Of a stretch of 64,000 bases of DNA, positions 1-57,485 are shown piece after piece. The notes beneath the pieces are model-generated. The model did not search any database. It was not told where the DNA came from and saw nothing but the letters and a program-made list of their open reading frames with translations. Source of the DNA: Amphiscolops sp. MND2022 (taxonomy: Eukaryota); assembly GCA_964187785.1 (NCBI GenBank), contig OZ076418.1:25482001-25546000 (forward strand). The letters run 5' to 3'. The first letter of the stretch is position 1; each line of letters opens with the position of its first letter. A program made the position numbers and the translations under genes.

Positions 1-535
1 TCTGAAGCGAGTTGTTTACAGACAGTTATTGTTAGTCAACCTTTATACCGCCTATTAACAACTTTGTGGATATTGATGAAGTAATTTCAAGTGCCTATTG
101 ACAAGCTTTTGTCAGAAGACAAAGTAATTTGTCTTAGGAAATACGAAGGATGAAAGTCCAATATGGAAATCCAAAAAGAGGTTTTGGAGAAACCGGTGGG
201 TTTACCGCTTTTCCCGCAAAATTTGGGAAAGGAAATTAGGTCACTACGACTACATCGAATCACTTCTGCAGTTTGATCACTTAAAACCGAGTAACACGAG
301 TCAGGATTGCAAAAAACTCTAATCAATCGATCTTTAAAAGAAATCTCCCTACAATTCGACGTGGAAGAATTTGAAAGGCCGCTTGTTAGCGAGGCCAACG
401 AATGCAGGACATACGAGTGCCCAATCTTCCAACTTTGATGTTTGATACGGCAACTTTCAGGTTCAACTGTATTTGCGTGGGTTTGGACATGACACCGAAC
501 CAACCAGGAATTTTCCTGCATCCGGGCAACACGAT

Positions 536-2621
536 TGTCACGACCCGCTCCCGGTCGGGATTTTTCTTGCTGCGGAGGAATCCCAAAATTCGCAAGAGGG
601 AGAGGACACGGAAGAATTACGCAGTGTTAAGTAAACTTTATACATTAACTCACCTTTGTCTAGACTGCAACACGAATTAAAATCCACGGAAGCGTTACGT
701 GAAAGTATCCAAAATGATTTTAAGCAAAATAAGATTTCCGGTTTAATGTTTTCACATGTAAACATTTTTGTTACTTCCGGTTTCAACGGCTGAAAATTGC
801 ATGCCAATCTAAATATTAAGAAAGAAAAACACTCATAACGCTGGGATCATTTCTCTCCTTTCCACACTGAAATGAAAACACTAAAACAATATTTAATTCC
901 GTAATCCCAACGGAACTCATACGATCTAAAATGAAAAGAACATCAAAATAGTATAGCAGATTCAATTTGGAATCTGAAGTAGTTGTAAGAAAGCCTCTCA
1001 AATTACAGTCAAGTAACCTGAGCAAACTTTTACAACGTTATGACAGCGTCGCTCAGATAAACAAGTAACAGGTATTTCTATTTTTACGGACCAATAGCGT
1101 CGCTGCTAAGACCGGTATATTTGCGCTCACGCTAGTAAGAAACCACTCCGATGACGTCACTAAGAATGAATTTAAAGATGGCGAATTTACTCCGAGTTTG
1201 TTCCGCTAGCAGCTAAGAAAGCTACACTCAATCTCAATACGTACGGAGCATTTACGGGGCGTTTACGGAGCAAATTGTAATAGATGAAGCTATACCTAAT
1301 GTTAATACATGTAAAACAACCGTGGAAAATCCTAAGACTCAGAGAATATTCTAATACATCAAGACATTCCTGAGAACATGTAGAATCATACTAAAATATT
1401 CAAAACATTACAAGTTTTCACTTTTTCCATCCGGATTTGTCCCGTTTCGTGATCAATTAAAACATTCGTGTTGCAGATCAAGACAGAAGAAAATATGTGA
1501 AACAGGTGCTCTCCGTTGTTGAAACGGTATTTTATGTTTGTTGAAGTTTGTGGTGAATTATGTTTGTTATATTATTTAACCCAATCTACGCATGTAAATT
1601 ACAGTTAGAATATTTAGCCCAATTGTTGCATGTAAATTACAATCTAAAGTTGTGTTTTATTACGATAACTCAATCCCTGATATGTGCTAATTACTCCCCA
1701 GCATCATTTGTTCCTTTCCAAAATGTTTAACACTTTAGTCTAAAATTCATCCGCAATATTTCCGTAACCATTTTTGCTTGTCATACTTTTGTTGCGAACG
1801 GATGTTCTTCGCTAGACAGTGAGTGAATCATTGTTCACGTCAGCGTGCCTTTTGCGATAGAAATTCAAACTAGGCATTTATTTTGCCGCCTTTTCCGTGA
1901 TGAAACCGGAAATGGGAGTGTTGAACAAAAATGATTTCAACAAGTACTTCGTAAGGGAACCGTAACTAGGAATTTAAAATTGTGAACAATTAATTAAAGG
2001 GTTGAAATGATATGGATGATTAAGCATTTTTAGTGAACAAAACGGATTTTAGGGATTCCTAGGAATTTTTAGGTGAGGAACAAATGATGCTTGAAAGGTA
2101 TATATAGCTAGAATCTTCATGTAAAATTTAATCAATCTTTTGTTCCACTGCTAATAACTCTGTTCCGTTATAACAACGAAAACTCAATTTCTTCGACGAA
2201 TTTAAATATTTCCGAAGACCTTGTTCTTGAACTCTGAAAATGACCACTAGAAGTCAAAAGAGAAAAGCAGCTGAAGAGCTTATTTCAACTGAAATAGAAA
2301 CTCCTCTACCCGAAAACACTCCGAGTGTAAATCCTGTAGCTGGTACAAGCAAATCTCCTAAAGTCTCTGCAGATAACTTAGAGGAAATAAAATCATCACT
2401 AAGAAAGGAAATAATGTCTGATCTTAGTAAAATCTTAGCTGAGAACCAGAAGGAAATGCTAAGACTAATCGCCCCAACCGCTAAAAAACAACCTGCAATA
2501 AGAACAGCGGAAGAGTCTGATTCTGATCCCGAAAACATTCCGGAAAACGCAACTTCAACTCCGATCAGAAATAAAACTACTGCGACTGCTTCTAAAACTA
2601 CCCCGATAAACAGTCGCAACA
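536..2621 (+). repeat. 5' LTR of element 1
   Basis: Starts TGTCACGAC and ends GTCGCAACA. Matches 14296-16381 except at 1138/14898 and 2200/15960 in a by-eye comparison. CCAAT at about 1091 and TGACGTCA at 1152-1159. Confidence 0.97.
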
Positions 2622-3649
2622 TGGTGACAGGAGTCCTCAATGACTCTACAAACCAGCCCACCAAAAGGCCAAAACACCGCGCATCTAACGACCAATCGAA
2701 AGAACGTCCAACTACATCAAAAATCCTGTTCGCACCACAACCGCAGACATTCCCATCGACAAACCTACTCCCAATGCCGAAAGCACTCACAGCTTCACTT
2801 CCCGTGTTCGACGGTAAGTCAGAAAAATTCGAACTTTTCGAAGACTTATTCCGAAACAACATCAAAATGTATCCCCACTTAACTGAACTCCAAAAAATAA
2901 ATTATTTCCACTCACTCCTGAGAGGAAACGCACTTCAAGCGTACTGTAACCTGGACGATACCAAAAAAGACAACTTGGAAGAAGTCATAACGGCCTTCAA
3001 ACGACGCTTTGGCGACTTCCAATCCTCTGCAAAAGCGCGATGTGAATGGGACGCACTACACTTTGACCCCACTAAGCAAAAATTACATGAATTCCTGGAT
3101 GTCCTGCAAAAAACCGCAAAAGAAGCGTTTGGTCCAGAGGCACAAAAATTCATAGACAAGGCAATATACGCAAAAATGCCGGACCATGTCAAAAAGATTC
3201 TCAACCGTGCCTACCTCGAAGACAAGCCGTACAACGACATTGTCCTCCATCTCGAAAGAGAGATGCGCCTTAATGGCCTAGGCGCCCCCGACGAAACAAT
3301 ATTAGTTCCACTAAACACGGTCGACGTTGCTCCCACGGAACCGAAAAAAGAGCCCGCCCAACGAGGAAATTGCTTCCACTGTGGAAAATACGGCCACTAC
3401 AAAGCCCAATGCAGAAAACTTCGCAAAGACCGCTACTACGAAACTAAAGCGCAAAACGGTTCTACCAATACAAATGACCCGCCCAAACCTAAATGTGACA
3501 CTTGCGGAAAACTTCACAAAACTGAAAACTGCTGGTACGGGGCTAATGCGGCAAATGACCCCAGAAAGAAACGCCATGAATTTACCATACCTACCAGCCA
3601 CATCAGTGAACAACCGATCCCCACTGTTGAAATCCAGCCAAAAAACTAA
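2240..3649 (+). CDS. gag: Gag (469 aa), starting inside the 5' LTR
   Basis: LPVFDGKSEKFELFEDLF capsid-like segment. Zinc knuckles CFHCGKYGHYKAQC and CDTCGKLHKTENC. Confidence 0.93.
   Translation: MTTRSQKRKAAEELISTEIETPLPENTPSVNPVAGTSKSPKVSADNLEEIKSSLRKEIMSDLSKILAENQKEMLRLIAPTAKKQPAIRTAEESDSDPENIPENATSTPIRNKTTATASKTTPINSRNMVTGVLNDSTNQPTKRPKHRASNDQSKERPTTSKILFAPQPQTFPSTNLLPMPKALTASLPVFDGKSEKFELFEDLFRNNIKMYPHLTELQKINYFHSLLRGNALQAYCNLDDTKKDNLEEVITAFKRRFGDFQSSAKARCEWDALHFDPTKQKLHEFLDVLQKTAKEAFGPEAQKFIDKAIYAKMPDHVKKILNRAYLEDKPYNDIVLHLEREMRLNGLGAPDETILVPLNTVDVAPTEPKKEPAQRGNCFHCGKYGHYKAQCRKLRKDRYYETKAQNGSTNTNDPPKPKCDTCGKLHKTENCWYGANAANDPRKKRHEFTIPTSHISEQPIPTVEIQPKN
2622..2634 (+). promoter_or_regulatory. 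Primer-binding site (tRNA-Leu-like)
   Basis: TGGTGACAGGAGT immediately after the LTR-terminal CA. Its reverse complement ACTCCTGTCACCA resembles eukaryotic tRNA-Leu 3' ends (..ACTCCTGACACCA). Confidence 0.8.
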
Positions 3650-6600
3650 AAACGCCGCGCCTCCGCTTCGGGGAAACGGTAGACGCAAGGGCATACACGA
3701 TACAGGATCCCCCAAATAGATATGAAGAAGATTTCCTTACAGAGTGCAATGAGGAACCAACCCAAGACTGGCAACGACGCTGGAACGTAGGCATGATACT
3801 TCGACACAATGCAAGACACCCAGATGATCCGACACCATTACCCCAATGGATAACGGAGTCGCCTGACAATTACGCGACACTCAAGAGGCCCCTACCCGAA
3901 TCAAAAACAGAACGTATCTACATATATGATAAAGACTACAGATGTGACCCTTGGGACGAGCCAACAATTTATGATACAGATAAACTCTCTTTCAAAATCC
4001 AAGTTCACAACCCTCAAGCTCAAACAACGGAAACCACAAATTCACCTCCACCGCCGCCATCAATCCTCAAAAAGACACAACCGTCCTCAACAGTACCCGT
4101 CGCCGCCTCGTCCACTCCCATAGATGCTGAAAACATTATCTGCATAGAGGATAGGACAATATGGGCAAGACAAGAAAAAGAACAACGCGGGGCAGACGAC
4201 CAAACAGTATCACCCCCAACAACACCAACTGCATTACCAACCCAAGATCACAATAATGCAGACGATGAAATAACGGAATGTCCACAACAACTACCTTATG
4301 ACCTCAAAGTCATAAAAGAATTCATACAACACGACAAGGACGACGACTACATTCCACTGATGTCAGCAATTACCCTAAAGAAGAAAAGGAGAATGCTCTT
4401 CATATCCCTAGACTTCGAAAAGGTCAGAATAGACGCCCTGGTAGATTCAGGCGCCTACATAAATGTCATCAGCGAGAGAGATGCCGAAAAAATACAAAAG
4501 GAAACTAAAGCGGCCATAACAGCAAAAGCACCGCCGCCACCCTTCAAAATTCAATACGCCAATACTGAACTTGAAAAAGCCCTCGCAACATACACGATGA
4601 AGTTCAACATCGGAGACTACACGTTTGAAGAAACCTTCATCATAATGACAAAAGCATCATTCCCAATCATAGGTCTAGCATTTCTCCGGAAACATTCCGC
4701 GATCTTAGACACAGCGCAGGGAACAATCGACTTCCCACAAATACAAATCACCCTGGCCCTAAAAGACGAAAAGCAGAAGTGTAACCCCAAACCTATCACC
4801 GTCAAAACCGAAGAAAAACATACCATCCCGGCACAATCTACACGGATCATACACGCGTCCATAACTGTGAGTACTGACCACCCAATAACTGGGACTATAC
4901 AACCCCTACCACAGTATGATGAGAACGCAAAACTCATAATAGCCCCTGCAATTACAACAGCTCGGGATAAACGCGTGCCTATTAAAATAGCGAACACAAC
5001 AGACTTCCCCTACACCATAACCCCCCACACAAAATTAGCAGAATTACAAATACTGAAACCCGAAGAAACGAAATCGATACGAGCAGTAGATATAGCAGCC
5101 CTCAATCTACTCACCGAACACGACGATGTTGTTGCGTACGTTAACGCACTGATGCAAGTTGATTCGGCAGAACAAACAGAAGAGAAATTCTGGTTCCCAA
5201 CTCCCGAAAATCCCGGAGATGAATCGGAACACACACCTATCCAACAACGCATTCTACGAGAACTACGAGAATTACAACGATTAGAAGAACTGGACCCCAA
5301 ACAAGATGAAAAATCCAGAACACAATTTCTTTCGCTATTCAAATGGAATGAGTCACTAATAACAGGAGAAGACCGTGAAAACCTAGAATCTATACTTGTT
5401 GAATTCAATGATATCTTTGCACGTCATCGGCTAGACATCGGAATGAATACGCAATTCAAAGTCTCACTGACGCCCAAAAACGACAACCCGGTATACACAC
5501 AAAGCTTGCCCGTACCAATCAACCTAAAAGACGACCTCACAGTGGAACTAGCCTTAATGCATAAATACGGGATCATCACCACCCTCCCCTTCTCCAAATA
5601 TGCCAGCCCTATCTTCGCGCAACGCAAACCCAACGGTAAACTACGACTCCTTGTAGACTTGCGGAAGATCAACGCACTCATCTCAGACGACTATATCAAC
5701 AACAACCACCCTATCAGCACCCTCTCAGATGCGGCACAACACCTAGCGGGGAAACAATTGTTTTGCAAACTCGACTGCTCCCAAGCCTACCACTGCCTCC
5801 AAATGGCAGATCAAAGGTCAGTAGAACTTCTCGCTTTTAATTTTGCTAGCAGAACGTTTGCCTACCGAAGGTTGGCACAAGGCCTCAGCAGAGCACTGTC
5901 AGCATTCTCGAGCTTCATGCGAGAATATCTGGACACAGTCATCAAAGCAGATCAGTGTGCCCAATATGTTGATGACATTGGGATTGCCGCAAATACAACG
6001 GAACAACTAATCAAGAACATCAGAGCAGTCTTCAAATGCATCCGCAAAGCTGGCCTAAAACTGACAATCGAGAAATGCCACTTCGGGGTCACTCAAGTTG
6101 AATTCCTCGGAAGAACCATCACGCCTAACGGAATAGCCCCGCAAGACCACAAGATCACCAATTTCTTGTCCAAAATCAGATTCCCCAGATCAAAGAAGCA
6201 AGTCCAAAAATATATCGGATTCATCAACTACTACCGAAACTACATACCACGACTGTCAGAAAAAATGATCGGTATGTACGAACTCCTAAAAGCAGACGCC
6301 AAAATCACTATATCAGAGGAACTAGTTGACAATTTCAAAGCTATCAACGCAAGCCTAGCGGAAGCCTGTGGACTTGCACTCAGACAGCCGATTGCAGGAA
6401 AACAATACGTGCTCATGACGGATGCTAGTTTCAGAGCATCTGGATACGCGCTCATGATAGAAGAAAACGATGATAAAAAACTTCTCTCCAAAAGAAAAAC
6501 TTTCGCACCCGTAGCTTTCGGATCTCGCGTCTTCTCTCCGTCACAACTGAAGATGTCGATATACTGCAAAGAATTCCTCGCAATATATCATGCATTCCTC

Positions 6601-8859
6601 GAATATAGTCACATTCTCTGGGAAACAACACTACCCACACTAGTACTGACAGACAACAGATCAGTAACGAGATTTTTCCAGACGAAAACAACGCCACCCG
6701 CTCTCTGGAATGCCTGTGACTACGTACTTCAGTTCAAATTCCGGATCATGCACGTAGCGGGCTCGCAAAATACAGCAGCCGACTTCCTGTCTCGCCTCGA
6801 ACTAACCCCAAAAGAACGAATCCAACTCAAATTACGAGACGACATCATAACGGCGCCAATTGAGGTTAATCTACAGTCCACAGACGTTGCGGACGAAGAA
6901 CAACTCTTTTTCCTGCCAGACGAAGAAGAGGAATCAGAACAAGAAATTTTCGCCAGGAAAGCCCTTAGCAAGCAACGAGCAATAGACGAAAAGGAACAAC
7001 AGAACTTGACAACGGAAGTCGCAGAAACAGTACACATACCTCTCAACTCAGCAGTATACGCCTTTGGAGCTATCAAGGAAAATGCCCGCATTCGCAACGA
7101 ACAGGACGCGGACCCAATATTGAAAGCATTGAAACTACGACTGCTCCACGAAGAGTACGACAAACATCTCCTCAAGACCGAACCTAGAGGACGGAACCTA
7201 CTACGTCACGAAGAAAGAATAATAGTCAAAGACGGAGTACTCATGCGTAAATACTACGGAGAAGATGGCACAGTAACACATAACCAAATTCTCATACCGA
7301 AACACATCGTACCAGAGCTCTTATCGACGCTACACGGAAAAATGAACAAACACCCAGGAATCACCAAAATGATTCAGGAAAGCCGAGCAAAGTACTACTA
7401 CCCGGGACTAGCGCGAAAAATCCGAGCCTGGGTCATCAACTGCCCAGACTGCATAGCCAACAAACGAATTGACACGCGCCAAATACGTCCTAAAATGCTG
7501 AGTAATACAGAATTCACATTCGGACCAGAAGACTGTCTAGAAGTCGATATACTACCCAACCTACCTGCATCAAATGGCTACAAACACATCATAACCATGA
7601 TGGACGTTTTCTCCCGCTACCTATTCGCGTACCCTGCACAAGACATGACTGCCAGAACAGTAGGCCGATGCATAATAGACGTCATGACACGCCACTGCTA
7701 TCTGCCTACAATAATCCTCACAGACAAAGGATCACAATTTCGATCAGACGTCATAAATCAGATAGCACAAACACTAGACGTACGGATTAGCCACGCATCG
7801 ACAAAACATGCACAGACAATTGGGATACTCGAGAGAACTCATGCCTCATTAAAAACTTCCCTCAAAATATCAACGGGTGAACGCCGTTCAATGTGGCACA
7901 GATACGTCCAAATCGCAGTCATGAATTACAATACAAGCTATCACGAGAGCCTAGGCTGTGAACCAACAACGGTGTTTCACGGACGCATCCCGTATAACAT
8001 CCTGGACATCAAATTGGGACTCAAGCCAGAATGGAAGAAAGATGCCAACGAAGACCTAACGGACGAATTACAAAAACAAATAACTGAGATACATCAATCA
8101 GCCAAGGACAACCTTATGCAATCATATTTGAAATATAAGCGATATTATGATAAAAAAGCGACAGCAACGCCATTGAAAATCAATGACTATTGCTATGTCC
8201 TGAATCCGAAGGCTGATAACCAGTCAATGAAATTCGCTTTCAAAGATTGCATTTGGACAGGACCATATATAGTGGTCAAAGTTCTTTCCAACAACAACTA
8301 TGTCGTAAGACGGACAGGAACAAGATATACGCAAACCCTCCATAGAATTCGCCTAAGGCTATACGCGCCCAATCAACGAGTACCTGACGTAACAGTCAAA
8401 GTGGAAGATCAACTTCCAGATCCTGAGGTTAAAACAACCCATGACGATTGGTACGCGCAAGCTTGGGAAACCGAATTCGGAGAAGTTCTGTTCGGAAACT
8501 CATCGGAAAGAGAAAATGAGGAAGCCACCATCACAGAACTGACAGCGGATGACGGAGTTACGACGGAACAAGATACAGTTATAACAACTGCAGATGAAAA
8601 CTCGACGGCAGAGCAACCTCCCTCAGGAAATGAAACGTCACTTAATCTAGATGTCAGCGACAACCCTTTCATAATGATTCCGCCGCCTATAGAAAGCCCT
8701 CCCATACCACCTACACTACCGCCTATAGTTGTCGGATACAACCCGAGGAAAACTGGAAGATACAATTTACGTCCTAATCCTAAGCCTAACGCACATCCAG
8801 ATTTTCGGATGCTTGACGCAGTCACAACGGAAGAAACATCTCAGACTCAAAATGAATGA
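3631..8859 (+). CDS. pol: Pol polyprotein (protease, dUTPase-like spacer, RT, RNase H, integrase); first ATG at 3793
   Basis: Protease LVDSGA; RT KLDCSQAYH and QYVDD; RNase H TDAS..E..TDN..D; integrase HHCC finger, EVD/TDKG/LER triad and WTGPY (GPY/F) motif. No stops or frameshifts. Confidence 0.97.
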   Translation, partial: NPAKKLKTPRLRFGETVDARAYTIQDPPNRYEEDFLTECNEEPTQDWQRRWNVGMILRHNARHPDDPTPLPQWITESPDNYATLKRPLPESKTERIYIYDKDYRCDPWDEPTIYDTDKLSFKIQVHNPQAQTTETTNSPPPPPSILKKTQPSSTVPVAASSTPIDAENIICIEDRTIWARQEKEQRGADDQTVSPPTTPTALPTQDHNNADDEITECPQQLPYDLKVIKEFIQHDKDDDYIPLMSAITLKKKRRMLFISLDFEKVRIDALVDSGAYINVISERDAEKIQKETKAAITAKAPPPPFKIQYANTELEKALATYTMKFNIGDYTFEETFIIMTKASFPIIGLAFLRKHSAILDTAQGTIDFPQIQITLALKDEKQKCNPKPITVKTEEKHTIPAQSTRIIHASITVSTDHPITGTIQPLPQYDENAKLIIAPAITTARDKRVPIKIANTTDFPYTITPHTKLAELQILKPEETKSIRAVDIAALNLLTEHDDVVAYVNALMQVDSAEQTEEKFWFPTPENPGDESEHTPIQQRILRELRELQRLEELDPKQDEKSRTQFLSLFKWNESLITGEDRENLESILVEFNDIFARHRLDIGMNTQFKVSLTPKNDNPVYTQSLPVPINLKDDLTVELALMHKYGIITTLPFSKYASPIFAQRKPNGKLRLLVDLRKINALISDDYINNNHPISTLSDAAQHLAGKQLFCKLDCSQAYHCLQMADQRSVELLAFNFASRTFAYRRLAQGLSRALSAFSSFMREYLDTVIKADQCAQYVDDIGIAANTTEQLIKNIRAVFKCIRKAGLKLTIEKCHFGVTQVEFLGRTITPNGIAPQDHKITNFLSKIRFPRSKKQVQKYIGFINYYRNYIPRLSEKMIGMYELLKADAKITISEELVDNFKAINASLAEACGLALRQPIAGKQYVLMTDASFRASGYALMIEENDDKKLLSKRKTFAPVAFGSRVFSPSQLKMSIYCKEFLAIYHAFLEYSHILWETTLPTLVLTDNRSVTRFFQTKTTPPALWNACDYVLQFKFRIMHVAGSQNTAADFLSRLELTPKERIQLKLRDDIITAPIEVNLQSTDVADEEQLFFLPDEEEESEQEIFARKALSKQRAIDEKEQQNLTTEVAETVHIPLNSAVYAFGAIKENARIRNEQDADPILKALKLRLLHEEYDKHLLKTEPRGRNLLRHEERIIVKDGVLMRKYYGEDGTVTHNQILIPKHIVPELLSTLHGKMNKHPGITKMIQESRAKYYYPGLARKIRAWVINCPDCIANKRIDTRQIRPKMLSNTEFTFGPEDCLEVDILPNLPASNGYKHIITMMDVFSRYLFAYPAQDMTARTVGRCIIDVMTRHCYLPTIILTDKGSQFRSDVINQIAQTLDVRISHASTKHAQTIGILERTHASLKTSLKISTGERRSMWHRYVQIAVMNYNTSYHESLGCEPTTVFHGRIPYNILDIKLGLKPEWKKDANEDLTDELQKQITEIHQSAKDNLMQSYLKYKRYYDKKATATPLKINDYCYVLNPKADNQSMKFAFKDCIWTGPYIVVKVLSNNNYVVRRTGTRYTQTLHRIRLRLYAPNQRVPDVTVKVEDQLPDPEVKTTHDDWYAQAWETEFGEVLFGNSSERENEEATITELTADDGVTTEQDTVITTADENSTAEQPPSGNETSLNLDVSDNPFIMIPPPIESPPIPPTLPPIVVGYNPRKTGRYNLRPNPKPNAHPDFRMLDAVTTEETSQTQNE
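3640..3646 (+). promoter_or_regulatory. -1 programmed ribosomal frameshift slippery heptamer A AAA AAC
   Basis: Heptamer directly before the gag stop TAA (3647-3649). The pol frame is -1 to gag and open from 3631. A GC-rich segment follows. Confidence 0.8.
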
Positions 8860-9041
8860 AAACTCTCATCAGGCTAAACCGAACCGGAATAGCTATGTTA
8901 AATTTTCCAATCATCCAAATCTACAGAACTACAAAACACAAAAAAAGGAGTGCCCCATAAGAATGAACAAAAGTTAGCCAACAAAGAACATAATACAACA
9001 AGAGGCACAACAAACGACGACACATTAAAGAATAAGGATCA

Positions 9042-12000
9042 TCAGTTTTGTTTACTCTTGGAAGGCTTCTTCAACCTATGGACCACGTCAGGATCCTCCT
9101 CGCCTTTTTTCTTTCCCTTCTTCGGTTTCGTTGATGTACTGACTCCGCTACTTCCGGACGTATAACCGCTCTTCTTTGGTTTAGAGGCACTGGGAACAGG
9201 TTGTCTCGACTCATCAGCCTTCTTACTTTTAGTAGCAGAACTCAGAACACAACTTGACTCACTAACGACTGAACCTTGCCTGGAACGCGACTCACGGTTA
9301 ACTTTGTTAAGGCCAATGTAGTGACTCTCGAAAGACTTACGGCGCTCCAACAGAAACTCCCGATAACGCGATCTGTACACATCGAGCAAATCATCTAGCC
9401 CCACATCGGACAATCCATTCCACAAATTAAAACCAGGGGATACATAAAATAACCCTGCACTATCAACTGCTTCACGAACGGCATCCAACGTACTGTCCAC
9501 AAAAAATGACTTGTGCGAATAACCCCAACTCAGAATAAACGACTGTACCAATAACAAGCAGTCCTGGAACGTCCCCGCATCAAAAGCACAGCCACTCAGA
9601 TCCATAATGACAGTAGGAGGAACACTCTCTGGCATTCCGACAATCAAGCAACAAAGCTTAAAAACACGAAACAGATGAACCCGGGCTTGAAAACTGAAGT
9701 CTCGCACCAGATAGCGAACGACGTCCGGAGTAGCACTAGCAGAAAAGCTACCGCTCGCGTGATGCCTCCGTTTCTCCACAATATAGCTGTGATACTCCTC
9801 AACAGCAGCATCCATCTCATCATCATTCAAAGCACCACAGGATTTTAACAATTCACACAAGGAGAAAAACAAGCTGAATATACTACTGTCATCGCCCTCC
9901 AGCATGATCTCAGGACAGAAACTGTACAGTCCCTGACACAATTGAGACGTCACGGTTACGTTCCGAAGCAGCACAACAACAAGTTGATCCAAGAAAATGC
10001 GACACTTTACCCGGAATTCCCGGATCTCGCTCGTTTTCCCGGCAGCAAGTTCTTTTCCGTACGGGTAATTCACTAGGAAATCTTCAATTGGCAACGATCG
10101 AAAGGATTCCAACTTTGAAACATCCATGTAAGCTTCCCACTCATGAATACCCGGCAGATCTGCGTCAACACGAGTCTTCAGCAACAGACAATAAATGAAA
10201 TTGCAAATTTCACCGTAACTGTGAAACACGTAGTCAGGACGGGCTTGCTGCAACTTTTCGAAGTTAACGTTAACTGAAACAACACACACGTTAACAAAAG
10301 TACTATAAAATACGACACACAGCCGGAACGACAATCGAAGGACAGTCAGTCAACCCAATATACAAGCAAAAACAGTCTAGAAACAACTGACAGAAGAACC
10401 AAACCATACTCACACAAATTCAGCACCAAGCGAAGCAACCCGAAACGCAGTACCAACAGGTTATCCGAAATCAACTCGAAATCGGTACCTCGCACCTAAA
10501 ACATAGGAAAAATAGAATACAAGACATATCCCTAACCAGTGGCAAAACAATGTCAACATACCAAATACCCGAAAAGAAAAAAAAAAAAAAAACACTCACC
10601 CTATCAACGACCTCTTTGAGATGAGGATGTCCGGTGTAACGAATATAAGGCCTGAAAGTAGGCCACAGCTCAATCAGATCTGTCAACACGGTCCGGAGAT
10701 CTGCAAAGGGGACGGCGCCAGCTCGGATACACCTCCTCAGACAGGGCTTATCCTCCAACCAGTCCTCATAAATAACGCTCCTCAGACGTAAGACCACATG
10801 CTCAACTGCAGTTACGACCTCCAACATGCCGAACACGTCCTGATGAGCTTGCCGAAAACTCTGTAATAACACCTCTTCAGTGAAACGCTGCACGACCAGG
10901 AAACGTCGCCCATCATCGCGGTGGTCACTCAGCACCCGGAGCAAAGTCGGGCTCCCGCCCACAATTGACAGAGGCAATTGCTTAGTGCCCAGACTGCACA
11001 TAATCCGCGCCAAAGGTACTAGCTCCGCGTCAGGCACAGGGAGTTCCAAAGATTGACTGGCCACACAAACTTTCTTCAAAAAGTCTCCCTCCCAACACAG
11101 CACATAGCAGCGTTCCTCACTCAAGGTCTTCTCGAACTGCACAGCATACTCCTTGAAGGTCACAATATTTTTCAGCACCTGGCGCAGAACCCTCGGAGCA
11201 AGGCCCTGACACAAGAACGACTAAAACAAAACAAAAGGATTAAACGGGCCCCCAGCGAATCCCTAACACCAACAACAGAACAAAGAAGACGGTACACCAA
11301 ACAATTATTCAACTAACCACGGTCTCTGACCGGCTCCAACGTATTGAATAATTTAACCGCTCTGCATCCACTGACGAACAGAAGTGGCCCCACAAGCGTC
11401 GTAACGTCGTGTAATCGCCTCCACTTTGCAGTAGTTCGCAGAAACTAGACACAAGCGTCATGAAGGGTACCCGGGAAGAAACAGTGGCGTGCTTTGGAAC
11501 AAGATCCTCCGGAAAAGGATACCCCTCCGCTAGATCCACGAAGGCCCGAGACTTGTAATCGGCGATCTGATTGTCAGTCAACACCATGGGTTCCATCAAT
11601 CGATTTAATACCGGAAGCCCCATATGCACACGATAAGTGACATCTTTGTACCAATGACGGTCACTCCCAAAGTGTCGAGCGAACTCGCCAGCTCCCTGCG
11701 CTTTCATGCCGACGTCACGCTGACACACCCGACAGAAAAAGAACTTCCCAGAGCCGCACTTCGGACCCGAGACGAAGACTTTGTAAGCAGGATTTAACTC
11801 CAACATATCCCGGCGCAAAGCATTTCGGCTACTGTATTTCTTTGTTTTCTTTGTAGTCCCAAGATGCTCTTCTACACGAGTAACTAGATCATTGAATCCT
11901 GCAACAGAACACCCACACTAAAACTCCCAAAAGAAAATAAAACCTAACGGACGTGACCTGTAAATAGAACACAACCCACGACACAATATCTCAATAAACA

Positions 12001-13068
12001 TACTAACCACTCTGAATTGTCTGCGTAGTCCGTCCGCCAACCTCCTCCACAAGTTGCTGACCCAACAGAGCCACGTCATGAGGACTCAACGCAATCGCCC
12101 CGGTACTGTAAGGCTCTTCTTCATCGGGGCCTACAACATCACACACTACTCAACCGTCAGACTAACAAATCACTTATCACCTCTTTACTCTCCCAAAACA
12201 CAGCCAATTACCCAACTAACTAGGAATACAACAAAACTACTAACTAATCCAAACTGAAGTAGCAGCTTTCAATGGGGGAGGAGGTGGGAAAAGCTCCACA
12301 GATTTCTTGGCCCGCTTGGTTGGCGTCGCATCTTTGAAAGAAAGCTTTCGAGCAACACCTGAACTCGAAACACCTACAGCACAGAATAACCTTAGCACTA
12401 TAGACACTCTATAGAGGAGACAACGAAAAAAAAAAAAAAAAAAAAGAAGTAGCAACAAACCTTCTTTCTCCTGGGGGGGGGCATCGGCCTCACCTCCGTG
12501 AGACTCTCCACCACTATCACCTGCACATCCCGACTCCGCGACAGCATCGGAAAGGCCAACTGTGATCAACTCATTAGCCACACTTTGGGGCACTGCAGCT
12601 GAGGTACTAGATATCAGGGGAGTAGAAGGACTTGGATCAGAATCATTCGGAAGGACTGCGGCCAACATCTCGTTAATAGTAGCCAGCGTAGGACTCAAAG
12701 GCGCAGTAGAAAGAACTGAAGAAACTGGCGGCAACACGTTTGACGATCCAGAAGTTGTTTTCTTGCTCCCAGTAGAAGAGTCTAACGTCACGACTCCGGG
12801 AGTGGCAGAAGAAGAAGCAGGTTGAGTTACTGAAAATCAAGATCTGGTTTGACGCGTCAGAGTTACGGGTAAGACTACAAAAGGCTGATCACCAAAAAGA
12901 ATAGTCCAATTACCCATGAAAGTCAGAAAGATTTTACCAACCTGAAACAGGGAACAGATTCTCTCCCTCAGAAGCAACAACGTCCTTATCGGAGTAACAA
13001 TAGTTCGTCTCGTAACCACTCTGGAAACCTGAGGCCTGAGGATCAAGAGAATTGACTTCTTTCTCCAT
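9042..13068 (-). CDS. Spliced antisense cargo gene, about 1082 aa: low-complexity N-terminus, C2H2/BED-like zinc finger, hAT-transposase-like fold. Exons 13068-12942, 12829-12461, 12373-12245, 12130-12008, 11898-11318, 11205-10600, 10495-10414, 10273-9042
   Basis: Seven GT-AG introns (112, 87, 114, 109, 112, 104, 140 nt; donors GTTGGT, GTTTGT, GTTAGT x3, GTGAGT x2) are all phase-compatible. Joined CDS is 3249 nt with no internal stop. Motifs CRVC-x16-H-x5-H, LTDLIELWPTFRPYI and LRLVLNLFNVNFEKLQ resemble hAT transposases. The 5' exons and start codon are less certain than the 3' exons. Confidence 0.8.
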
Positions 13069-13399
13069 GTTGGAAGAACAGAGAAGCAGTTTAACAGCAA
13101 TCTGAAAAAGAAAAGACAACCTTCACTACCCTGCTACAACAAAAGAAAAGAAACACCAACTCTGATAGGGACTAAAAGCTTAAAGGAAAAGCCGGAAAAT
13201 ACCCGAAGAATGAAAACAACAAAATCTTCAACCCCGAGGATACATCGGAAAAGATATTAAGAAGAACACTAAAGATCGAAGAAAGAAAATGCATAATCCT
13301 TTTCCCCTCGCATTTAAGCAAGATATGATATTGACGGAAGTATATCGCTTCCAAAAGGAAAAAGAAATCAAAGATTAAATTTGACCTTCTAAATGTCCT

Positions 13400-13688
13400 A
13401 AAAAGAAAAAATCATTTTCCTAATTAATGACGTCACACGGATTGCTCTCGGAAAAGAATTCACGACGTCATGATAAAGTTCAAAATCAGAAACTTTATTT
13501 ATATCGGTTCAGCCAATCACAGCGCAGTCGGAAACGAAACGTTCCCGAAGATAAAGTGAACCGGAATAAATCGGAAAATAACAGCCAATAGGAATGCAGG
13601 AAAATTACGAATGAAAAGGAAGTTGACCTTTTCATTTGCCGCATCGCAAACGTGAAGTTAAGTCAGCTGAAATCTTCAAAATTCAAAA
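13400..13688. promoter_or_regulatory. Putative internal bidirectional promoter
   Basis: Lies between divergent ORFs (antisense cargo and the 13689 sense ORF). TGACGTCA at 13428-13435, GACGTCA at 13464-13470, CCAAT at 13513 and 13585. Confidence 0.5.
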
Positions 13689-14390
13689 ATGAGCAACATG
13701 ATCATCGACATTTCGTCAGATGAAGAAAGCACCCCCCTACAGCAGAGTACTCCCATCAAATTCTACCCGCTCAACGTGATACAAGCCCTCAATCTGAGCG
13801 GAGAGTCTACAGTAGCTAAAATGGGGAGTGAAACGAGCATGGAAATGACAGCCTCAACTTTCGAATCCGGCCCATCCCCGTATAAGAAAATTACGTTTTC
13901 GACCTCACCAGTCAGTGAGGGAGAAGAGTTCAGAGTAGAAGGGCAAAATATTAACACAACCGATGAGAGCTACTTCGAAGAACCGGACACCCCCCGTCAA
14001 CTGCCTCCACTACAGCCTGCTCCAGTCTTACAGGATATAACCAACGGAGAACTTTCGCTCAACGAGCCGCCTACAAAAATTAATCGGCTTGATGATCTGA
14101 CGGAGCCTACCATAGAAGATATAGAGAACGTCTATGGAATCGACTTGCAGAGCAGCTCAGAGTTCAACGCACTATGCGGACGTGGGGCCCGTTTCACTTC
14201 TACGTTGCTGACAAGGACTCGCAAGCAGCCTGTGCTCATCACAAGGGAGATTCCGCACTGCCCCCGGCCCGTGTCTTCAGGCTATAGAGGCGCCCTGTCA
14301 CGACCCGCTCCCGGTCGGGATTTTTCTTGCTGCGGAGGAATCCCAAAATTCGCAAGAGGGAGAGGACACGGAAGAATTACGCAGTGTTAA
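13689..14390 (+). CDS. Additional sense ORF (233 aa, acidic, Ser/Thr/Pro-rich, unknown function) reading into the 3' LTR
   Basis: Long ATG-initiated ORF downstream of a promoter-like region. Crosses the PPT/LTR junction at 14296. No recognisable domain. Confidence 0.55.
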   Translation: MSNMIIDISSDEESTPLQQSTPIKFYPLNVIQALNLSGESTVAKMGSETSMEMTASTFESGPSPYKKITFSTSPVSEGEEFRVEGQNINTTDESYFEEPDTPRQLPPLQPAPVLQDITNGELSLNEPPTKINRLDDLTEPTIEDIENVYGIDLQSSSEFNALCGRGARFTSTLLTRTRKQPVLITREIPHCPRPVSSGYRGALSRPAPGRDFSCCGGIPKFARGRGHGRITQC

Positions 14391-16381
14391 GTAAACTTTA
14401 TACATTAACTCACCTTTGTCTAGACTGCAACACGAATTAAAATCCACGGAAGCGTTACGTGAAAGTATCCAAAATGATTTTAAGCAAAATAAGATTTCCG
14501 GTTTAATGTTTTCACATGTAAACATTTTTGTTACTTCCGGTTTCAACGGCTGAAAATTGCATGCCAATCTAAATATTAAGAAAGAAAAACACTCATAACG
14601 CTGGGATCATTTCTCTCCTTTCCACACTGAAATGAAAACACTAAAACAATATTTAATTCCGTAATCCCAACGGAACTCATACGATCTAAAATGAAAAGAA
14701 CATCAAAATAGTATAGCAGATTCAATTTGGAATCTGAAGTAGTTGTAAGAAAGCCTCTCAAATTACAGTCAAGTAACCTGAGCAAACTTTTACAACGTTA
14801 TGACAGCGTCGCTCAGATAAACAAGTAACAGGTATTTCTATTTTTACGGACCAATAGCGTCGCTGCTAAGACCGGTATATTTGCGCTCACGCTAGTACGA
14901 AACCACTCCGATGACGTCACTAAGAATGAATTTAAAGATGGCGAATTTACTCCGAGTTTGTTCCGCTAGCAGCTAAGAAAGCTACACTCAATCTCAATAC
15001 GTACGGAGCATTTACGGGGCGTTTACGGAGCAAATTGTAATAGATGAAGCTATACCTAATGTTAATACATGTAAAACAACCGTGGAAAATCCTAAGACTC
15101 AGAGAATATTCTAATACATCAAGACATTCCTGAGAACATGTAGAATCATACTAAAATATTCAAAACATTACAAGTTTTCACTTTTTCCATCCGGATTTGT
15201 CCCGTTTCGTGATCAATTAAAACATTCGTGTTGCAGATCAAGACAGAAGAAAATATGTGAAACAGGTGCTCTCCGTTGTTGAAACGGTATTTTATGTTTG
15301 TTGAAGTTTGTGGTGAATTATGTTTGTTATATTATTTAACCCAATCTACGCATGTAAATTACAGTTAGAATATTTAGCCCAATTGTTGCATGTAAATTAC
15401 AATCTAAAGTTGTGTTTTATTACGATAACTCAATCCCTGATATGTGCTAATTACTCCCCAGCATCATTTGTTCCTTTCCAAAATGTTTAACACTTTAGTC
15501 TAAAATTCATCCGCAATATTTCCGTAACCATTTTTGCTTGTCATACTTTTGTTGCGAACGGATGTTCTTCGCTAGACAGTGAGTGAATCATTGTTCACGT
15601 CAGCGTGCCTTTTGCGATAGAAATTCAAACTAGGCATTTATTTTGCCGCCTTTTCCGTGATGAAACCGGAAATGGGAGTGTTGAACAAAAATGATTTCAA
15701 CAAGTACTTCGTAAGGGAACCGTAACTAGGAATTTAAAATTGTGAACAATTAATTAAAGGGTTGAAATGATATGGATGATTAAGCATTTTTAGTGAACAA
15801 AACGGATTTTAGGGATTCCTAGGAATTTTTAGGTGAGGAACAAATGATGCTTGAAAGGTATATATAGCTAGAATCTTCATGTAAAATTTAATCAATCTTT
15901 TGTTCCACTGCTAATAACTCTGTTCCGTTATAACAACGAAAACTCAATTTCTTCGACGATTTTAAATATTTCCGAAGACCTTGTTCTTGAACTCTGAAAA
16001 TGACCACTAGAAGTCAAAAGAGAAAAGCAGCTGAAGAGCTTATTTCAACTGAAATAGAAACTCCTCTACCCGAAAACACTCCGAGTGTAAATCCTGTAGC
16101 TGGTACAAGCAAATCTCCTAAAGTCTCTGCAGATAACTTAGAGGAAATAAAATCATCACTAAGAAAGGAAATAATGTCTGATCTTAGTAAAATCTTAGCT
16201 GAGAACCAGAAGGAAATGCTAAGACTAATCGCCCCAACCGCTAAAAAACAACCTGCAATAAGAACAGCGGAAGAGTCTGATTCTGATCCCGAAAACATTC
16301 CGGAAAACGCAACTTCAACTCCGATCAGAAATAAAACTACTGCGACTGCTTCTAAAACTACCCCGATAAACAGTCGCAACA
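14296..16381 (+). repeat. 3' LTR of element 1 (carries a copy of the first 127 gag codons; ORF 16000-16389)
   Basis: Direct repeat of 536-2621, followed by TSD ACGAT. Confidence 0.97.
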
Positions 16382-16642
16382 ACGATTGACAACAAATGTT
16401 GCACACGAACTTGGCTGATTTGCGAGGTAATTTAGTTGAATCGTTAAATCAGTCCATGCAAAGTGCAAATCAACAAGGAGATACATCTTATTGAGGCTCT
16501 CATGAACCAACGTTATCCAATCCGATTCAAAGAAAAATAGGAGCGCAAATGTCCAAACGAGGAATAGATAGTATTTTGTGTGAAGCAATTTTTGCTTTCG
16601 CAGTGAGAAAAGCTGATATCCGCCCGCCTATAGCTATAGCTG

Positions 16643-16872
16643 ATATATGATTGAATAGATTTATTTTTAGAAACGAACCAGCTGATCTTTTCAAATTTCA
16701 TGTTTTCTGTGATGCTTCTGAAGTGGGTAACTGCAATTTCGCACTAGCTCAAGATTATAATCTTGAGCTAGTGCGAAATTGCAGTTACCCACTTCAGAAG
16801 CATCACAGAAAACATGAAATTTGAAAAGATCAGCTGGTTCGTTTCTAAAAATAAATCTATTCAATCATATAT
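16643..16872. repeat. Perfect spacer-less palindrome (115-bp arms)
   Basis: Centre AGATTA|TAATCT at 16757/16758. Arms are complementary out to 16643/16872. Confidence 0.93.
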
Positions 16873-17260
16873 GTTGTGAATTTTCTAGTTTTGATCTCCA
16901 TTACAGGTGAGAGTCAATAATATCAGATGGCAATTGTTTCATCCAATTGAATGTCTGCTTGCCAATCTTTTTCCATGATGTGCTTCAGCTTGAAAGGCCC
17001 AGACGAAAGCTACCGTAGTTGGTCAAATTTTTGCTCAGAACTTTTTTGTTGGAATAGTAAGTTCTAGTTGAAATCTGTAATAGTCTTTGAAATTAGCAGT
17101 TTAGCTGCCTTTCCGGCTTAATAAGACCTTAAGGTGATTCAACGTCTCAGAGTGTTAACACGATTATGAGTTACTGCCAACTGAAGCATGGAACAAATCA
17201 TTCCAAAGATATCCATTCAACTTAGAACATGGGTCCGAAACATTGATTTTGACCAAAACA
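16758..17260 (-). pseudogene. BEL/Pao retrotransposon RT-RNase H fragment
   Basis: One minus frame with two stops reads ..FNWMKQLPSDII..*WRSKLE..*LNRFIF..FHVFCDASEVG, matching the Pao pattern W(D)xxLP...LHxFCDAS. The far boundary is approximate. Confidence 0.7.
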
Positions 17261-19074: not shown

Positions 19075-21359
19075 TGTTACGACTGTTTACGAGTTGTTTT
19101 TGAAGTAGTCGTTTTTGATTTAATTGGGGTCGAGGTTGTGTTTGGTGGAACACTTTCTGATTCAGAATCAAAGTTTTCTAAGTTTTGGACAAACGATGTC
19201 TTTTTGATGACTGGAGCTATCAGTTTTAACATTTCCTTCTGATTATAAGCAGGAAATTTGGTGAGATCAGACATAATTTCTTTTCTCAGGGACGTTTTAA
19301 TCTCATTTAATTTCTCAGGCTGCATTCTAGGGAATTTTCGCGGTCCCGCTACGAGGTTCTCAACTGCGTTATTTTCAGAAGTCAAAGCTTCAAATTCTCC
19401 TGAGCCAAGCTCAGCTACTGCTTTCCGTGTCTGGCTACTAGTAGTATTTTTTGAACGAAAAAATGAGCATTAGTCTTTGGAATAGGTGAATTAGTCAACG
19501 ACGATTTTCGTTTCTATTACGGTGATTAAGGATTCACAAAACAGCAAAAGTATTACCCGAACTTACATGTCATTTTCTAGCTATACATACCGTTCTAGCA
19601 ACATTTGTTCCTCACCTAAAAATTCCTAGGTATCATAAAATTCGGGTTGGTTCAGTTGACTCCCTAATGATTCAAATTATTTCAGTCCTTCATCATAAAA
19701 TCAGGCATCTAATATCCTAGTTACGTCGCCATCCCGTATTATTTGTTGAATTAATTTTTGTTCAGGCAATTGCATTTTCTGTCTGATCTTCAAAATTGCA
19801 GCAAAATAAAAGCCTACTTGACATTTTCATCGACGAATGTACGCCAACGTGATCAATTAGTCAATTTCCAAGTTGGGAAAATTGAAATCAAGACAAAAGT
19901 ATGACACTCAAAAATTGGCAACGCAGCAACGCAACTAGAACGGAGCAAAAAGTTTCAGACATGGAAAAACTTGAATACTGATGGAGAGAAGGAACAAACG
20001 ATGCTAAGAAAAGTATTCCAGCAATTGATTACATAACTTGAACATTAATTGTATACAGTACTTGTTTCACTTACATAAGATACGAAGTTAGCCCATACGT
20101 GATGTTAACGGAAACCAACAATAACTTTAACATTCAGTATAGAATCTCATCACACGTATTGGCACAAATTGTGTAAAAATCGAATTGTAGTTGACATATT
20201 AGCATTAACCTTCAATATTTGCCAACATTTCAAATTATGGATAAATGGTGACCTTACGTCACACATTTAACCAACGTTCTAAAATGCTATACAACTTCAT
20301 GATTAGATGAATAAATATGTTCTATTGGAATATATCATTCTTGACGTAGTGTCATCAACGTAATTTAAAGAAGCGCCTTTGAGGATATCAAGATTCATCA
20401 ACCCATTTTGTTATCCTTCTTTACAGTAGAGCTTTCCTGATGTAAAATTCTACTTCTAAATTTTTTTACATTTGTCGATTCAGAAAGAAGTCACATTCAA
20501 AATTATTTTGAATTTTTATCCCGTAGTTGCGTTTTAACAATCCACTCCGTAGTCGCTCCGTAAGTATTTAGATTAGGTATAGCTTCACAATCTTGCAATT
20601 CACTCCGTAGTTGCTCCGTAAGTATTAGGATTAGGTATAGCTGAGTGGTGGCTGATGGATATAAAGCGGAGCGCATAGGCTTTCTTTCTCTTTCTCTTAG
20701 TTAGTCGGGGTTGCTGTGGTGATATTCGTCTTAGCTAAGTTCGCGTCTTGTTGGACTGAGCTCAAATAACTCGGCTGAGAGGGATGACGCTATTGGTCCG
20801 TAAAAATAGAAACACTAACTACTAGCTTGGTGGAGTGACGCTGTCGTAACGTTGTAAGTATTCGCTTAAATTGTTTGATTGTACTTTGAGTGAATTTTGA
20901 CAACTACTTTAATCTTTAGAAAACAATCCATTATAATATTCTGTATGTCTTTTTCATTTTATATTCTATGGATTCCGTTATAACTACGGACTTAAGCTTT
21001 GTCTTTGGTGTTTTCGTTTCAGGGTGGAAAAGAGATAAAGTTCCGTTACATAGTTTGTCTCCGTTTTGCTATATAGATTGACATGTGAAGTTCAGAAGAT
21101 AAACCGGAAGTAAAACGCTCACGTGTAAAATTAAAGACCGGAAGATTTAGTTAGGTTAAAATCCGTATCTAAAATTGTTCCGTAACGATTACTCAGATTT
21201 TGTTATCCGGGAAAATCATCTACAAATAGCCTAGCTGTACTGTAAGTGGAATTAATAAATTAGTTTAACAGTCCTTGCTGTAGCCGTGACCGGCTCCTCT
21301 CGCGTACCTCGGGATTCCTGCGCAGCAAGTGAAGAGACGACCGGGAGCGGGTCATGACA
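19075..21359 (-). mobile_element. Solo LTR related to element 1 family
   Basis: Minus-strand ends TGTCATGACCCGCTCCCGG ... AAACAGTCGTAACA match the element 1 LTR ends. Encodes a decayed gag N-terminus (..EIKTSLRKEIMSDLTK..NQKEMLKLIAP.., 19077-19385). Near-TSD ATTGG/AGTGG. Confidence 0.88.
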
Positions 21360-24149: not shown

Positions 24150-25384
24150 AAAATTGAAAATTAATGAACTGGGAAATAAATAGAATGATAATACAAAATG
24201 ATTAAAAACAATGACAATCAAAAAAAGCCAGAAAGGGTGGAAAGCACATCAAACACACATAAAAACAGTTACTAACGACCAGGGTAACCAAATTCGCTAC
24301 TGCAAAGAAATTGGATATCTTCCAATTGACTGGCTAACTCGGCAAAACACCATAAGCTTGATGGAGACCCCAAGATTCTAGACACGAAGAACTTGATAAT
24401 TTGGCACCAACATAAAAATGGTCCCTCACGGGAGCACAGAAAAACGGTTCCCATCAAAACTACGAAAACTCCGAAAAGTATCAATTCTTCGTCGTCCGAA
24501 ACATTGAACGTCTATAGAGAAAAATAGAGAAACTGGATGTGAGGCAGCATCAAAATCCATACAACAAAATCTGATTCTTCTACACACAAACCCACACTTA
24601 CTTGGTAGTACAAAGTTTCAATTTAATTCTGAGGCAATTTCAAGCTTTGTTAACTATTCAGAATGGGATGTTCGACTAATGTTGACCAACTAAATGCGGA
24701 TCTGACCAAGAACTAGGTAAAAATTTTTATCGAAATGCCTTTCATGTAAGAAAAAATGAACCTCAATAAAATTATAGTGGTAACCGAGAACACGAAAAAC
24801 CGAAGAGAACATCACAATTATGAAAGTATTGCCGGACTACATAATCGCCTCTCTTTTCTGGAGTAAAACAATGTCATTTATATGATATGCGTCAAAAAAG
24901 TTCAACCTTCAATCATTAATCCAAGCAACTGAAATTCGAAAATTTTAAATGCACGAGCACCAACACCATTGCTCGATGAAACGTCATACGTCCTACAGCC
25001 GGGTGAAACAGTTACAATTTCCAGTAGAATGCCTTATTTGATAGACCATGGTGCTACAAGCATTGCCAACAACTCGTCGCATTTCGAAAAAAATGAAGTT
25101 TCATGATCACCTTCTTTTTAGTCTGCTTCCTCAATACAGTGAAATATAACGCTGTAGGATACTAAGTGTTATTCGGAGCCACCATACACATTATCCACCG
25201 ACACACTCTAGCACACCCTCGTGTTCTATCGCTATAACAAACTAAGTACTTTAAAGTAGTTGACCACTCAACCTAAAAATTTAAAAATTGGTCAACCATC
25301 ATCTCACTGAAAATGCAGACGTTTACCTCATTGAGCTTCCAAAAGTCAACAACGACGTCCCGACATCCAGATTGTCCATGAACA
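24150..25384 (+). pseudogene. Old Gypsy relic (gag end and PR-RT spacer), 5' part; interrupted by element 2
   Basis: Degenerate RYCKEIGYL knuckle-like segment and YVLQPGETVTI segment similar to the element 1 pol spacer. Continues after the element 2 TSD. Boundaries approximate. Confidence 0.5.
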
Positions 25385-25610
25385 TGTGACATAGACAGTT
25401 GATATGTCATTTTATGGATTGACAGGCCTAACCTAACTGATAGAAAAGTACCAGTTAAAGATGTTCTGAAGTCATGTAGCTACTAAACATAGATATACGC
25501 TTGAGCCTACAGTACAGTTGCTATTACGTTGAGATCATTAAGAAGCAGATTTTGTATCTAGCTATTTCAGTTTTAATTAATTATTCAAGCCCTTTTCCTA
25601 CTTTACTTTA
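25385..25610 (+). repeat. 5' LTR of element 2
   Basis: TGTGACATAG...CTTTACTTTA, repeated at 31003-31230. Confidence 0.9.
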
Positions 25611-25640
25611 AGGCGCAATCAGCAATCTGAACAAATCAAC

Positions 25641-26837: not shown

Positions 26838-26840
26838 GCG

Positions 26841-57460: not shown

Positions 57461-57485
57461 TATGTTTGAGGAGGATGACGTGGCT

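Follow-up and report, generated by a model that had tools for sequence, protein, structure and literature searches.

Antisense accessory genes in retrotransposons with long terminal repeats (LTRs) are known mainly from plants. Retand TRP28, maize Grande gene23 and rice RIRE2 are antisense open reading frames (ORFs) located between pol and the 3' LTR; in Retand this region measures 2.9-6.6 kb and some of the ORF proteins are nuclear and possibly DNA-binding (PMC7264820, PMC11963269). The origin and function of the plant antisense ORFs are unknown, their sole known relative being the Pfam 'transposase 28' domain, itself of unknown function (PMC7264820, PMC11963269). Here, we have analysed a 64,000-nucleotide stretch of the genome of Amphiscolops sp. 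MND2022 (assembly GCA_964187785.1, contig OZ076418.1, positions 25,482,001 to 25,546,000 of the forward strand), hereafter the window. It holds an LTR retrotransposon, element 1, with an eight-exon gene antisense to its gag and pol, and for this gene an origin can be named with good support, a Buster-like hAT transposase.

The plant Retand/Grande/RIRE2 group is the closest described architecture. It resembles our locus in the place of the gene (a 5.4-kb region here), in its antisense orientation, in its presence in essentially all copies of the lineage, and in that both are suspected to act as nuclear or DNA-binding regulators. However, neither a hAT fold nor a multi-exon structure has been reported for the plant genes, whereas here the element has a DUF1759-type gag, and among animal Buster-like hAT derivatives are found the nearest fold relatives of the antisense protein. 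HTLV-1 HBZ and HTLV-2 APH-2 likewise lie antisense in the 3' portion of an LTR element and code for nuclear regulators, and HBZ may be taken as a functional analogue. The HBZ mRNA is spliced. Yet HBZ, which is transcribed from the 3' LTR, is a bZIP protein that does not descend from a transposase, and its gene has one intron, while the gene described here has seven introns and a predicted transposase fold.

With respect to the protein, the nearest structural or feature neighbours are ZBED5, ZBED8, FAM200A/B, ZMYM1/6 and GTF2IRD2, which have the domain order predicted for our protein (finger, RNase-H-like core, helical insertion, C-terminal domain). These are domesticated Buster/Charlie-type hAT genes, usually devoid of catalysis. 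They are single-copy host loci, whereas our gene exists in hundreds of copies and, at every locus inspected, within a retrotransposon, which indicates another mobile element as the domesticating party. The Hermes transposase (PDB 2bw3/4d1q/8edg) has, as predicted here, an RNase-H-like core followed by an all-alpha insertion/C-terminal region, and the matches to it are colinear. The DDE triad of Hermes is intact and the enzyme works on inverted repeats, while in our protein a Gly would occupy the place of the second carboxylate and inverted repeats around the gene are not evident, although no scan aimed at them was made. Finally, SCAND3/ZBED9 combines an integrase-type domain and a Buster-like hAT transposase part in one host gene (PMC3575427), and a SCAND3-named cluster was among the shape matches of exon 6 in the ESM Atlas. 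SCAND3 is however a single sense host ORF whose integrase derives from a GINGER2 DNA transposon (PMC3575427), in contrast to an antisense gene in an LTR element, and there is no evidence of its descent from an element like element 1. None of the compared systems is a retrotransposon-borne, multi-exon, hAT-fold gene, and searches of open-access papers brought up no account of an LTR retrotransposon that carries a hAT-like antisense gene.

We consider it likely that the gene is a hAT-derived antisense accessory gene of a Ty3/gypsy-type element clade, which has lost catalysis and helps its own element. If true, one class of mobile element would have been domesticated by another, and not by the host. 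Transposase domestication would then not need to be the work of the host; a retrotransposon could benefit from it.

A conserved multi-exon gene antisense to pol

All positions are window coordinates; the gene lies at 9042-13068 on the minus strand and gag-pol on the plus strand. Self-comparison of the window delimited element 1 as a 15,846-bp LTR retrotransposon (536-16381). Its plus-strand LTRs form a 2086-bp direct repeat with TG...CA ends (536-2621 and 14296-16381), 99.9% identical with two mismatches (1138 and 2200), and the 5-bp target-site duplication ACGAT stands on either side (531-535 and 16382-16386). Element 1 is very young. Its pol ORF (3793-8859, plus strand, 1688 aa) contains protease, reverse transcriptase, RNase H and integrase in the Ty3/gypsy order (Pfam; RVT_1, E = 3e-23; RT_RNaseH, 2e-13; Integrase_H2C2, 4.5e-12; rve, 2e-12). 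The LTRs, the duplication, gag and the order of the pol domains mark the element, by its sequence features, as Ty3/gypsy (Metaviridae-type).

The region between the pol stop (8859) and the 3' LTR (14296) measures 5436 bp, in agreement with the gap of 5.4 kb given by an earlier note made from the letters of the window alone. It contains minus-strand ORF pieces of 87, 183, 169, 247 and 430 aa (9042-13100), and removal of seven GT-AG introns, 87-140 nt long, connects eight exons in a stop-free coding sequence (CDS) of 3264 nt, corresponding to 1087 aa. GTTAGT/GTGAGT-type donors and pyrimidine-rich acceptors flank the introns. The earlier note had described an intact eight-exon gene with a stop-free product of 1082 aa; the spliced CDS and the conserved exon boundaries (see below) uphold the intact, stop-free gene, while the length has to be corrected, the difference arising from the choice of junctions. 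At intron 3, the donor GTTAGT keeps the frame, whereas a candidate donor 10 nt upstream breaks it.

Exon 1 (12942-13068) begins with the ATG at 13068, which is preceded by in-frame stops, and encodes aa 1-42. It is followed by the Ser/Thr/Pro-rich, fast-evolving exon 2 (12461-12829), by exon 3 (12245-12373) with a KRAKK basic patch, and by exon 4 (12008-12130), defined from the joined CDS and the comparison of boundaries. Exon 5 (11318-11898, aa 250-443) carries a zinc finger and then a helical region, exon 6 (10600-11220, aa 444-650) a predicted RNase-H-like core with the beginning of a helical insertion, and exon 7 (10414-10495) only 27 aa. The predicted all-alpha domain and a basic Lys/Ser tail are encoded by exon 8 (9042-10273, aa 678-1087), which ends at the stop codon 9042-9044.

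Using exon 8 as the query against 1.07 Gb of the own genome, we have scored more than 100 matches out of approximately 7500 first-look candidates. These matches form subfamilies at about 100, 81, 70, 67 and 52% aa identity and most of them are free of internal stops. Twelve diverged own-genome copies (L031-L042, 50-90% aa identity) were then compared together with their flanks. Their tblastn matches stop and start at the predicted exon borders, and for most boundaries of exons 4 to 8 the AG|exon|GT signals fall at the same codon positions; a few copies depart from this at an edge of exon 4 or 5, and one decayed copy does so at exon 6. Exons 5, 6 and 7 have fixed lengths of 581, 621 and 82 nt, with the sole exception of one copy with a 578-nt exon 5, and the introns next to them vary (78-208, 70-116 and 137-170 nt, respectively). 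The spliced frame of exons 5 to 8 is open over 834-844 aa in seven of ten copies, and in one copy of the 80%-identity subfamily the full eight-exon frame is open over 1077 aa. Since the exon boundaries are kept in diverged copies, the exon structure of the gene, as judged from these alignments, is not a product of chance.

Purifying selection on the coding sequence itself has been strong during the diversification of the element family. By the Nei-Gojobori method, dN/dS was 0.072 at a dS of 1.1 between the window and L042, and 0.05 at a dS of 0.16 between L031 and L040; in deeper pairs synonymous sites were saturated, with pN of 0.18-0.32. These values of 0.05-0.07, far from 1, together with the same architecture at every locus examined, agree with the proposal of the earlier note that the gene was kept as cargo. 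A large, multi-exon, constrained gene present in hundreds of copies, young ones included, makes its role directly testable. A profile search of 1.84 billion representatives returned 742 relatives, all ORF-sized, without names and from ENA assemblies.

The place of the gene within its elements is equally constant. Pol, on the opposite strand, converges on the antisense gene in all 17 loci checked. In the own genome, the C-terminal part of pol was seen in this arrangement at 12 of 12 loci; assembly ERZ25074608 added three such loci and ERZ1742291 one 4.3-kb contig. The best own-genome match to the ERZ1742291 homologues is 41% identical at most, hence this sample comes from another organism. The antisense position between pol and the 3' LTR is present in most copies of the lineage. 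Every one of the 17 inspected loci of the gene is within an LTR element and, with more than 100 scored copies, the gene is unlike a low-copy host locus. Moreover, the gene region shares the strand skew of gag-pol: the AT skew is 0.25-0.27 (plus strand A-rich), and the GC skew is about -0.2 at 8001-12000 and -0.08 at 12001-14000. This common skew fits a long residence of the gene in the element.

Pol and the antisense gene have diverged to different extents. Across L031-L042, pol (about 80-96% identical) is more conserved than the antisense gene (50-81%). Compared with the window, L041 is 96% identical in pol and ~65% in exon 8, against 93% and 80%, respectively, for L042. The two genes thus disagree on the closest subfamily, which suggests, at the level of sequence, recombination between subfamilies. 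The last 40-50 residues of pol (8717-8859) are 66-80% identical in L043, L061 and L063, the contig of the other organism included, and in these elements, which keep the pol end, the antisense gene is less than 40% identical. The pol end overlaps the expected 3' untranslated region of the antisense gene and may therefore be under a double constraint.

Some features were also noted around the 5' end of the gene. A TATAAA lies at 13503, 435 nt upstream of the antisense ATG, and a pair of potential acceptor sites immediately before the ATG hints at an untranslated leader exon. Two joints near 12942-13330 were considered as introns and rejected; they are non-canonical and look like variant copies. 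A 123-bp unit at 12820-12942, which corresponds almost exactly to intron 1 with 11 exon bases added, forms a high-copy repeat of its own: the assembler gives it ~70 times the depth of the remainder of element 1, and at least 12 places elsewhere in the genome match this unit alone at 100%. At this place, a 161-nt stretch is 92-93% identical between subfamilies, versus 81% for the exons. The unit ends in GGTTG...CAACC and may represent either a small mobile element or some module common to several families.

Predicted folds and probable hAT ancestry

The hAT derivation put forward in the earlier note was examined in three pieces of the protein: the zinc finger, exon 6 and exon 8. Structural comparisons were done with AlphaFold2 (AF2) models of separate exons, built on alignments of relatives; these are fragments only, and TM-scores were 0.3-0.45. 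The Cx2Cx16Hx5H finger announced by the earlier note was located at aa 305-331, within exon 5 (11654-11734, minus strand), as a BED/zf-C2H2_12-like finger, and its C55, C58, H75 and H81 (exon 5 numbering) are invariant among relatives. Its context is BED-like, with upstream aromatic residues and a G-x-x-F-x-R-H motif, and the region gave no Pfam match to zf-BED at E-values up to 10. In language-model features, exon 5 was nearest to GTF2IRD2, FAM200B/C and BED-type clusters (0.84-0.90), which carry zf-C2H2_12 or zf-BED.

The exon 6 model (pLDDT of 82) shows a helix, β1-β2-β3, α1, β4, α2 and then long helices, the β1-β2-β3-α1-β4-α2 RNase-H-like motif corresponding to exon 6 residues 25-99 (10924-11148, minus strand) with a Gly after β4. 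In a Foldseek search of the PDB, ranks 1 to 10 were all Hermes transposase (E = 4e-3 to 4e-2, probability up to 0.99). Searches of the AlphaFold database (AFDB) clusters returned ZMYM1-like, DUF4371, ZBED1/ZBED8-like, CGGBP1 and hAT C-terminal-domain proteins (E = 3e-5 to 3e-3). Among the ten rows listed from the ESM Atlas, seven were DUF4371/FAM200-ZBED5 RNase-like clusters, with 103-131 aa aligned at 3.5-4.5 Å in the named rows, and three had no names. With VIA, 177 aa were aligned to Hermes 8edg, model residues 5-207 to chain residues 155-354. Exon 6, as modelled, is therefore read as the RNase-H-like motif plus the start of the insertion domain, so that the comparison with Hermes that the earlier note had proposed returned an RNase-H-like, Hermes-like fold.

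The exon 8 model is all helical, with a pLDDT of about 90 over residues 10-210, and its all-alpha domain (9273-10244, minus strand) matches the hAT insertion and C-terminal region in the fold searches. Foldseek found no match for it in the PDB. In the AFDB it retrieved, with E-values down to 2e-7, proteins among which were several with the hAT C-terminal dimerisation domain and ZBED8, and in the Atlas Dimer_Tnp_hAT/DUF4371/ZMYM1-like clusters over 205-223 aa at 4.1-4.9 Å. Aligned to Hermes with VIA, 165 residues of the model (1-243) corresponded to chain residues 365-608.

The three separately tested pieces occur in the order expected for a hAT protein: finger, RNase-H-like core, insertion/C-terminal domain. 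These data were weighed against the alternative that the gene is real and conserved but of other descent, an unrelated or very old RNase-H-like plus helical protein that resembles hAT. Such an origin appears quite unlikely, since the pieces reach the same hAT subgroup in the correct order, the top ten PDB matches of exon 6 are all Hermes, and the Hermes alignments are the longest and colinear, covering residues 155-354 and then 365-608. The three pieces point to the Buster-like FAM200/ZBED5/ZMYM1/GTF2IRD2 branch of hAT as the nearest relatives. Because the three pieces land in order on the same hAT subgroup, colinear with the hAT architecture, we regard the hAT ancestry of the antisense gene as well supported and very probable, as the earlier note had inferred. 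For annotation, this means that hAT-like gene models in this lineage would be retrotransposon genes, and not host genes or DNA transposons.

A few minor search results concern the same exons. DUF4371 (PF14291), which marks classical Buster-type hAT sequences, had no significant match anywhere in the own genome in the Pfam search (best E = 0.04); one weak match (C5:10443959) lies within a 214-aa open frame, the size of the exon 6 ORF. Language-model searches proposed RhoGAP and mitovirus RdRp for exons 8 and 6 (0.81-0.88), and were discarded as noise of low recognition.

Probable loss of catalysis and possible role of the protein

According to the topology of the model, the second catalytic Asp would be expected after β4. 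This position (G88 of exon 6) is Gly in 33 of 35 relatives, no acidic residue is found among the common residues from 83 to 93, and the β4 region of the relatives reads Pro-Leu-Ser-Ile-x-Gly-Gly/Ala-Ser-Pro. The DDE triad is thus predicted not to be intact and, with a Gly where the second catalytic Asp would sit, cut-and-paste activity has probably been lost. We have weighed this against a still-active hAT transposase, either in a nested DNA transposon or as a second cut-and-paste route for a composite element. The own genome is indeed rich in genuine hAT transposases carrying Dimer_Tnp_hAT (150 scored, 2206 candidates), and acidic residues are retained near β1: 29 of 34 relatives have Glu30 at the β1 end, and roughly half of the relatives have D32. 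However, besides the Gly after β4, the repeated unit is an LTR element with a 5-bp duplication and not the 8-bp duplication of hAT, and in the 12 own-genome loci the neighbours of the gene, pol and ORF3 (see below), are constant. The gene keeps this place, with no evident inverted repeats (though no scan was aimed at them), in elements whose pol is down to 32-46% identical, and Pfam detected no Dimer_Tnp_hAT signal in it. The LTR boundaries, the 5-bp duplication and the Gly after β4 make an active cut-and-paste enzyme very improbable.

We have considered how a catalytically dead, hAT-derived accessory protein would have arisen and been kept. An ancestral element would have acquired a hAT gene, placed in the reverse orientation. 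On the genomic RNA of the element its introns would read CT..AC and be left in by the spliceosome and, not being removed from the RNA that is reverse transcribed, they would be inherited by every new insertion. A separate minus-strand transcript of the gene could be spliced. Both the direction of capture and the shielding of the introns by the antisense orientation are sound inferences, and the locus would represent a natural case of introns surviving retrotransposition by being antisense to the genomic RNA. The Gly after β4 suggests that at least one DDE carboxylate has been lost and that the protein no longer cuts and pastes DNA.

Such a protein would most likely be a sequence- or chromatin-binding nuclear factor. 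A nuclear location is suggested by the BED-like finger and the NLS-like basic patches, namely KRAKK in exon 3 and the Lys-rich tail of exon 8 with a conserved DPDVVHRLKK motif at its end. The protein would benefit its own element, either through LTR or internal transcription that it activates or de-represses, or as a tether of the integration complex. Since retrotransposon lineages are selected through their own propagation, an accessory factor that helps the element is the simplest reading. More specifically, it is conceivable, at somewhat less than even chances, that this LTR-retrotransposon clade depends on a domesticated, dead hAT protein as a promoter switch or for steering integration, encoded by an intron-protected antisense gene.

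The main functional rival is a self-limiting repressor. The protein would repress the very element that encodes it, or its antisense transcript would give rise to double-stranded RNA against the genomic RNA, and the gene would be kept since moderated copies persist. Silencing pathways can be fed by antisense transcripts of retroelements, a role put forward for the plant antisense ORFs (PMC7264820); as our gene converges on pol, the transcripts could overlap. Nevertheless, a role exerted only by RNA would leave unexplained the dN/dS of 0.05-0.07, the fixed exon lengths and the conserved hydrophobic core. The family is also thriving, with hundreds of exon 8 copies without internal stop and LTRs 99.9% identical, which is unexpected under strong self-repression. 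We consider this explanation unlikely overall, although its variant with a protein repressor is not contradicted by these data.

Several observations weigh against the interpretation of the gene as a dead, hAT-derived accessory factor. At the sequence level, Pfam was silent on the ORF pieces and on 29 + 6 relatives, hmmsearch of the PDB with three profiles gave no match, and hhalign comparisons of three alignments (exons 5 to 8, exon 8 and exon 6) with 5-16 own-genome hAT transposases returned probabilities of 0.1-0.2%. The hAT-like short motifs listed in the earlier note were accordingly without significance by sequence methods, yet they agree with the fold evidence. The catalytic assignment comes from the topology of the model and not from a residue-level superposition, and the acidic residues E30 and D32 remain near β1. 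Splicing rests on comparative evidence. The stretch is contained in four runs of unlisted kind, whose contigs of up to 163 kb cross the introns unspliced; given the length of the contigs and the unspliced introns, these runs are most likely genomic DNA. The search restricted to RNA-Seq runs listed none, which speaks neither for nor against splicing. In addition, no canonical poly(A) hexamer (AATAAA, ATTAAA and common variants) was found on the minus strand in the 745 nt past the stop (8300-9041). Finally, the proposed roles in DNA binding, transcription and targeting are speculation.

Other features of element 1 and of the window

A putative primer-binding site starting with TGG (2622-2633, plus strand) was recognised by reading the sequence and abuts the 5' LTR. 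The gag ORF (2240-3649, plus strand) has DUF1759 and a zinc knuckle (Pfam). It opens 382 bp inside the 5' LTR, and the 3' LTR repeats the ATG with a 129-aa ORF (16000-16389). Since the ORF opens inside the LTR, the true start of gag is probably a later ATG; the alternative is that the LTR supplies coding sequence. Downstream of the antisense gene, a sense ORF3 of 233 aa (13689-14390, plus strand) lies between this gene and the 3' LTR, which it enters. ORF3 is kept at 27-63% identity in the same position in all 12 own-genome loci, has an acidic Ser-rich start and an Arg/Gly-rich end, and gave no match in Pfam; the element clade may have in it a second accessory gene. An Rfam search over 1-17000 produced no match.

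A second element lies inverted at 44027-59686, with LTRs at 44027-45029 and 58682-59686 that are 96.9% identical, and its pol is only about 32-46% identical to that of element 1. A remote homologue of the antisense gene is present in it (47281-48746, plus strand), antisense to that element. It was recognised by three colinear matches (47281-47472, 48226-48396 and 48540-48746), with an E-value of 2.6e-6 for the zinc-finger stretch. One of the breaks between matches falls inside exon 6 and one match crosses the site of intron 6, indicating that the intron positions are not all common to both elements. The second element also contains an internal 572-bp duplication (50640-51209 and 54538-55108, 97.4% identical) that overlaps the pol region.

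The window holds further retroelement sequences. A third, unrelated gypsy-like element occupies 25384-31230, with 229-bp terminal repeats 95.6% identical and gag-pol split into several ORFs. A gag fragment on the minus strand (19122-19445) is 55% identical to element 1 gag, and a pol-like stretch, also on the minus strand (61450-64000), continues past the window edge.

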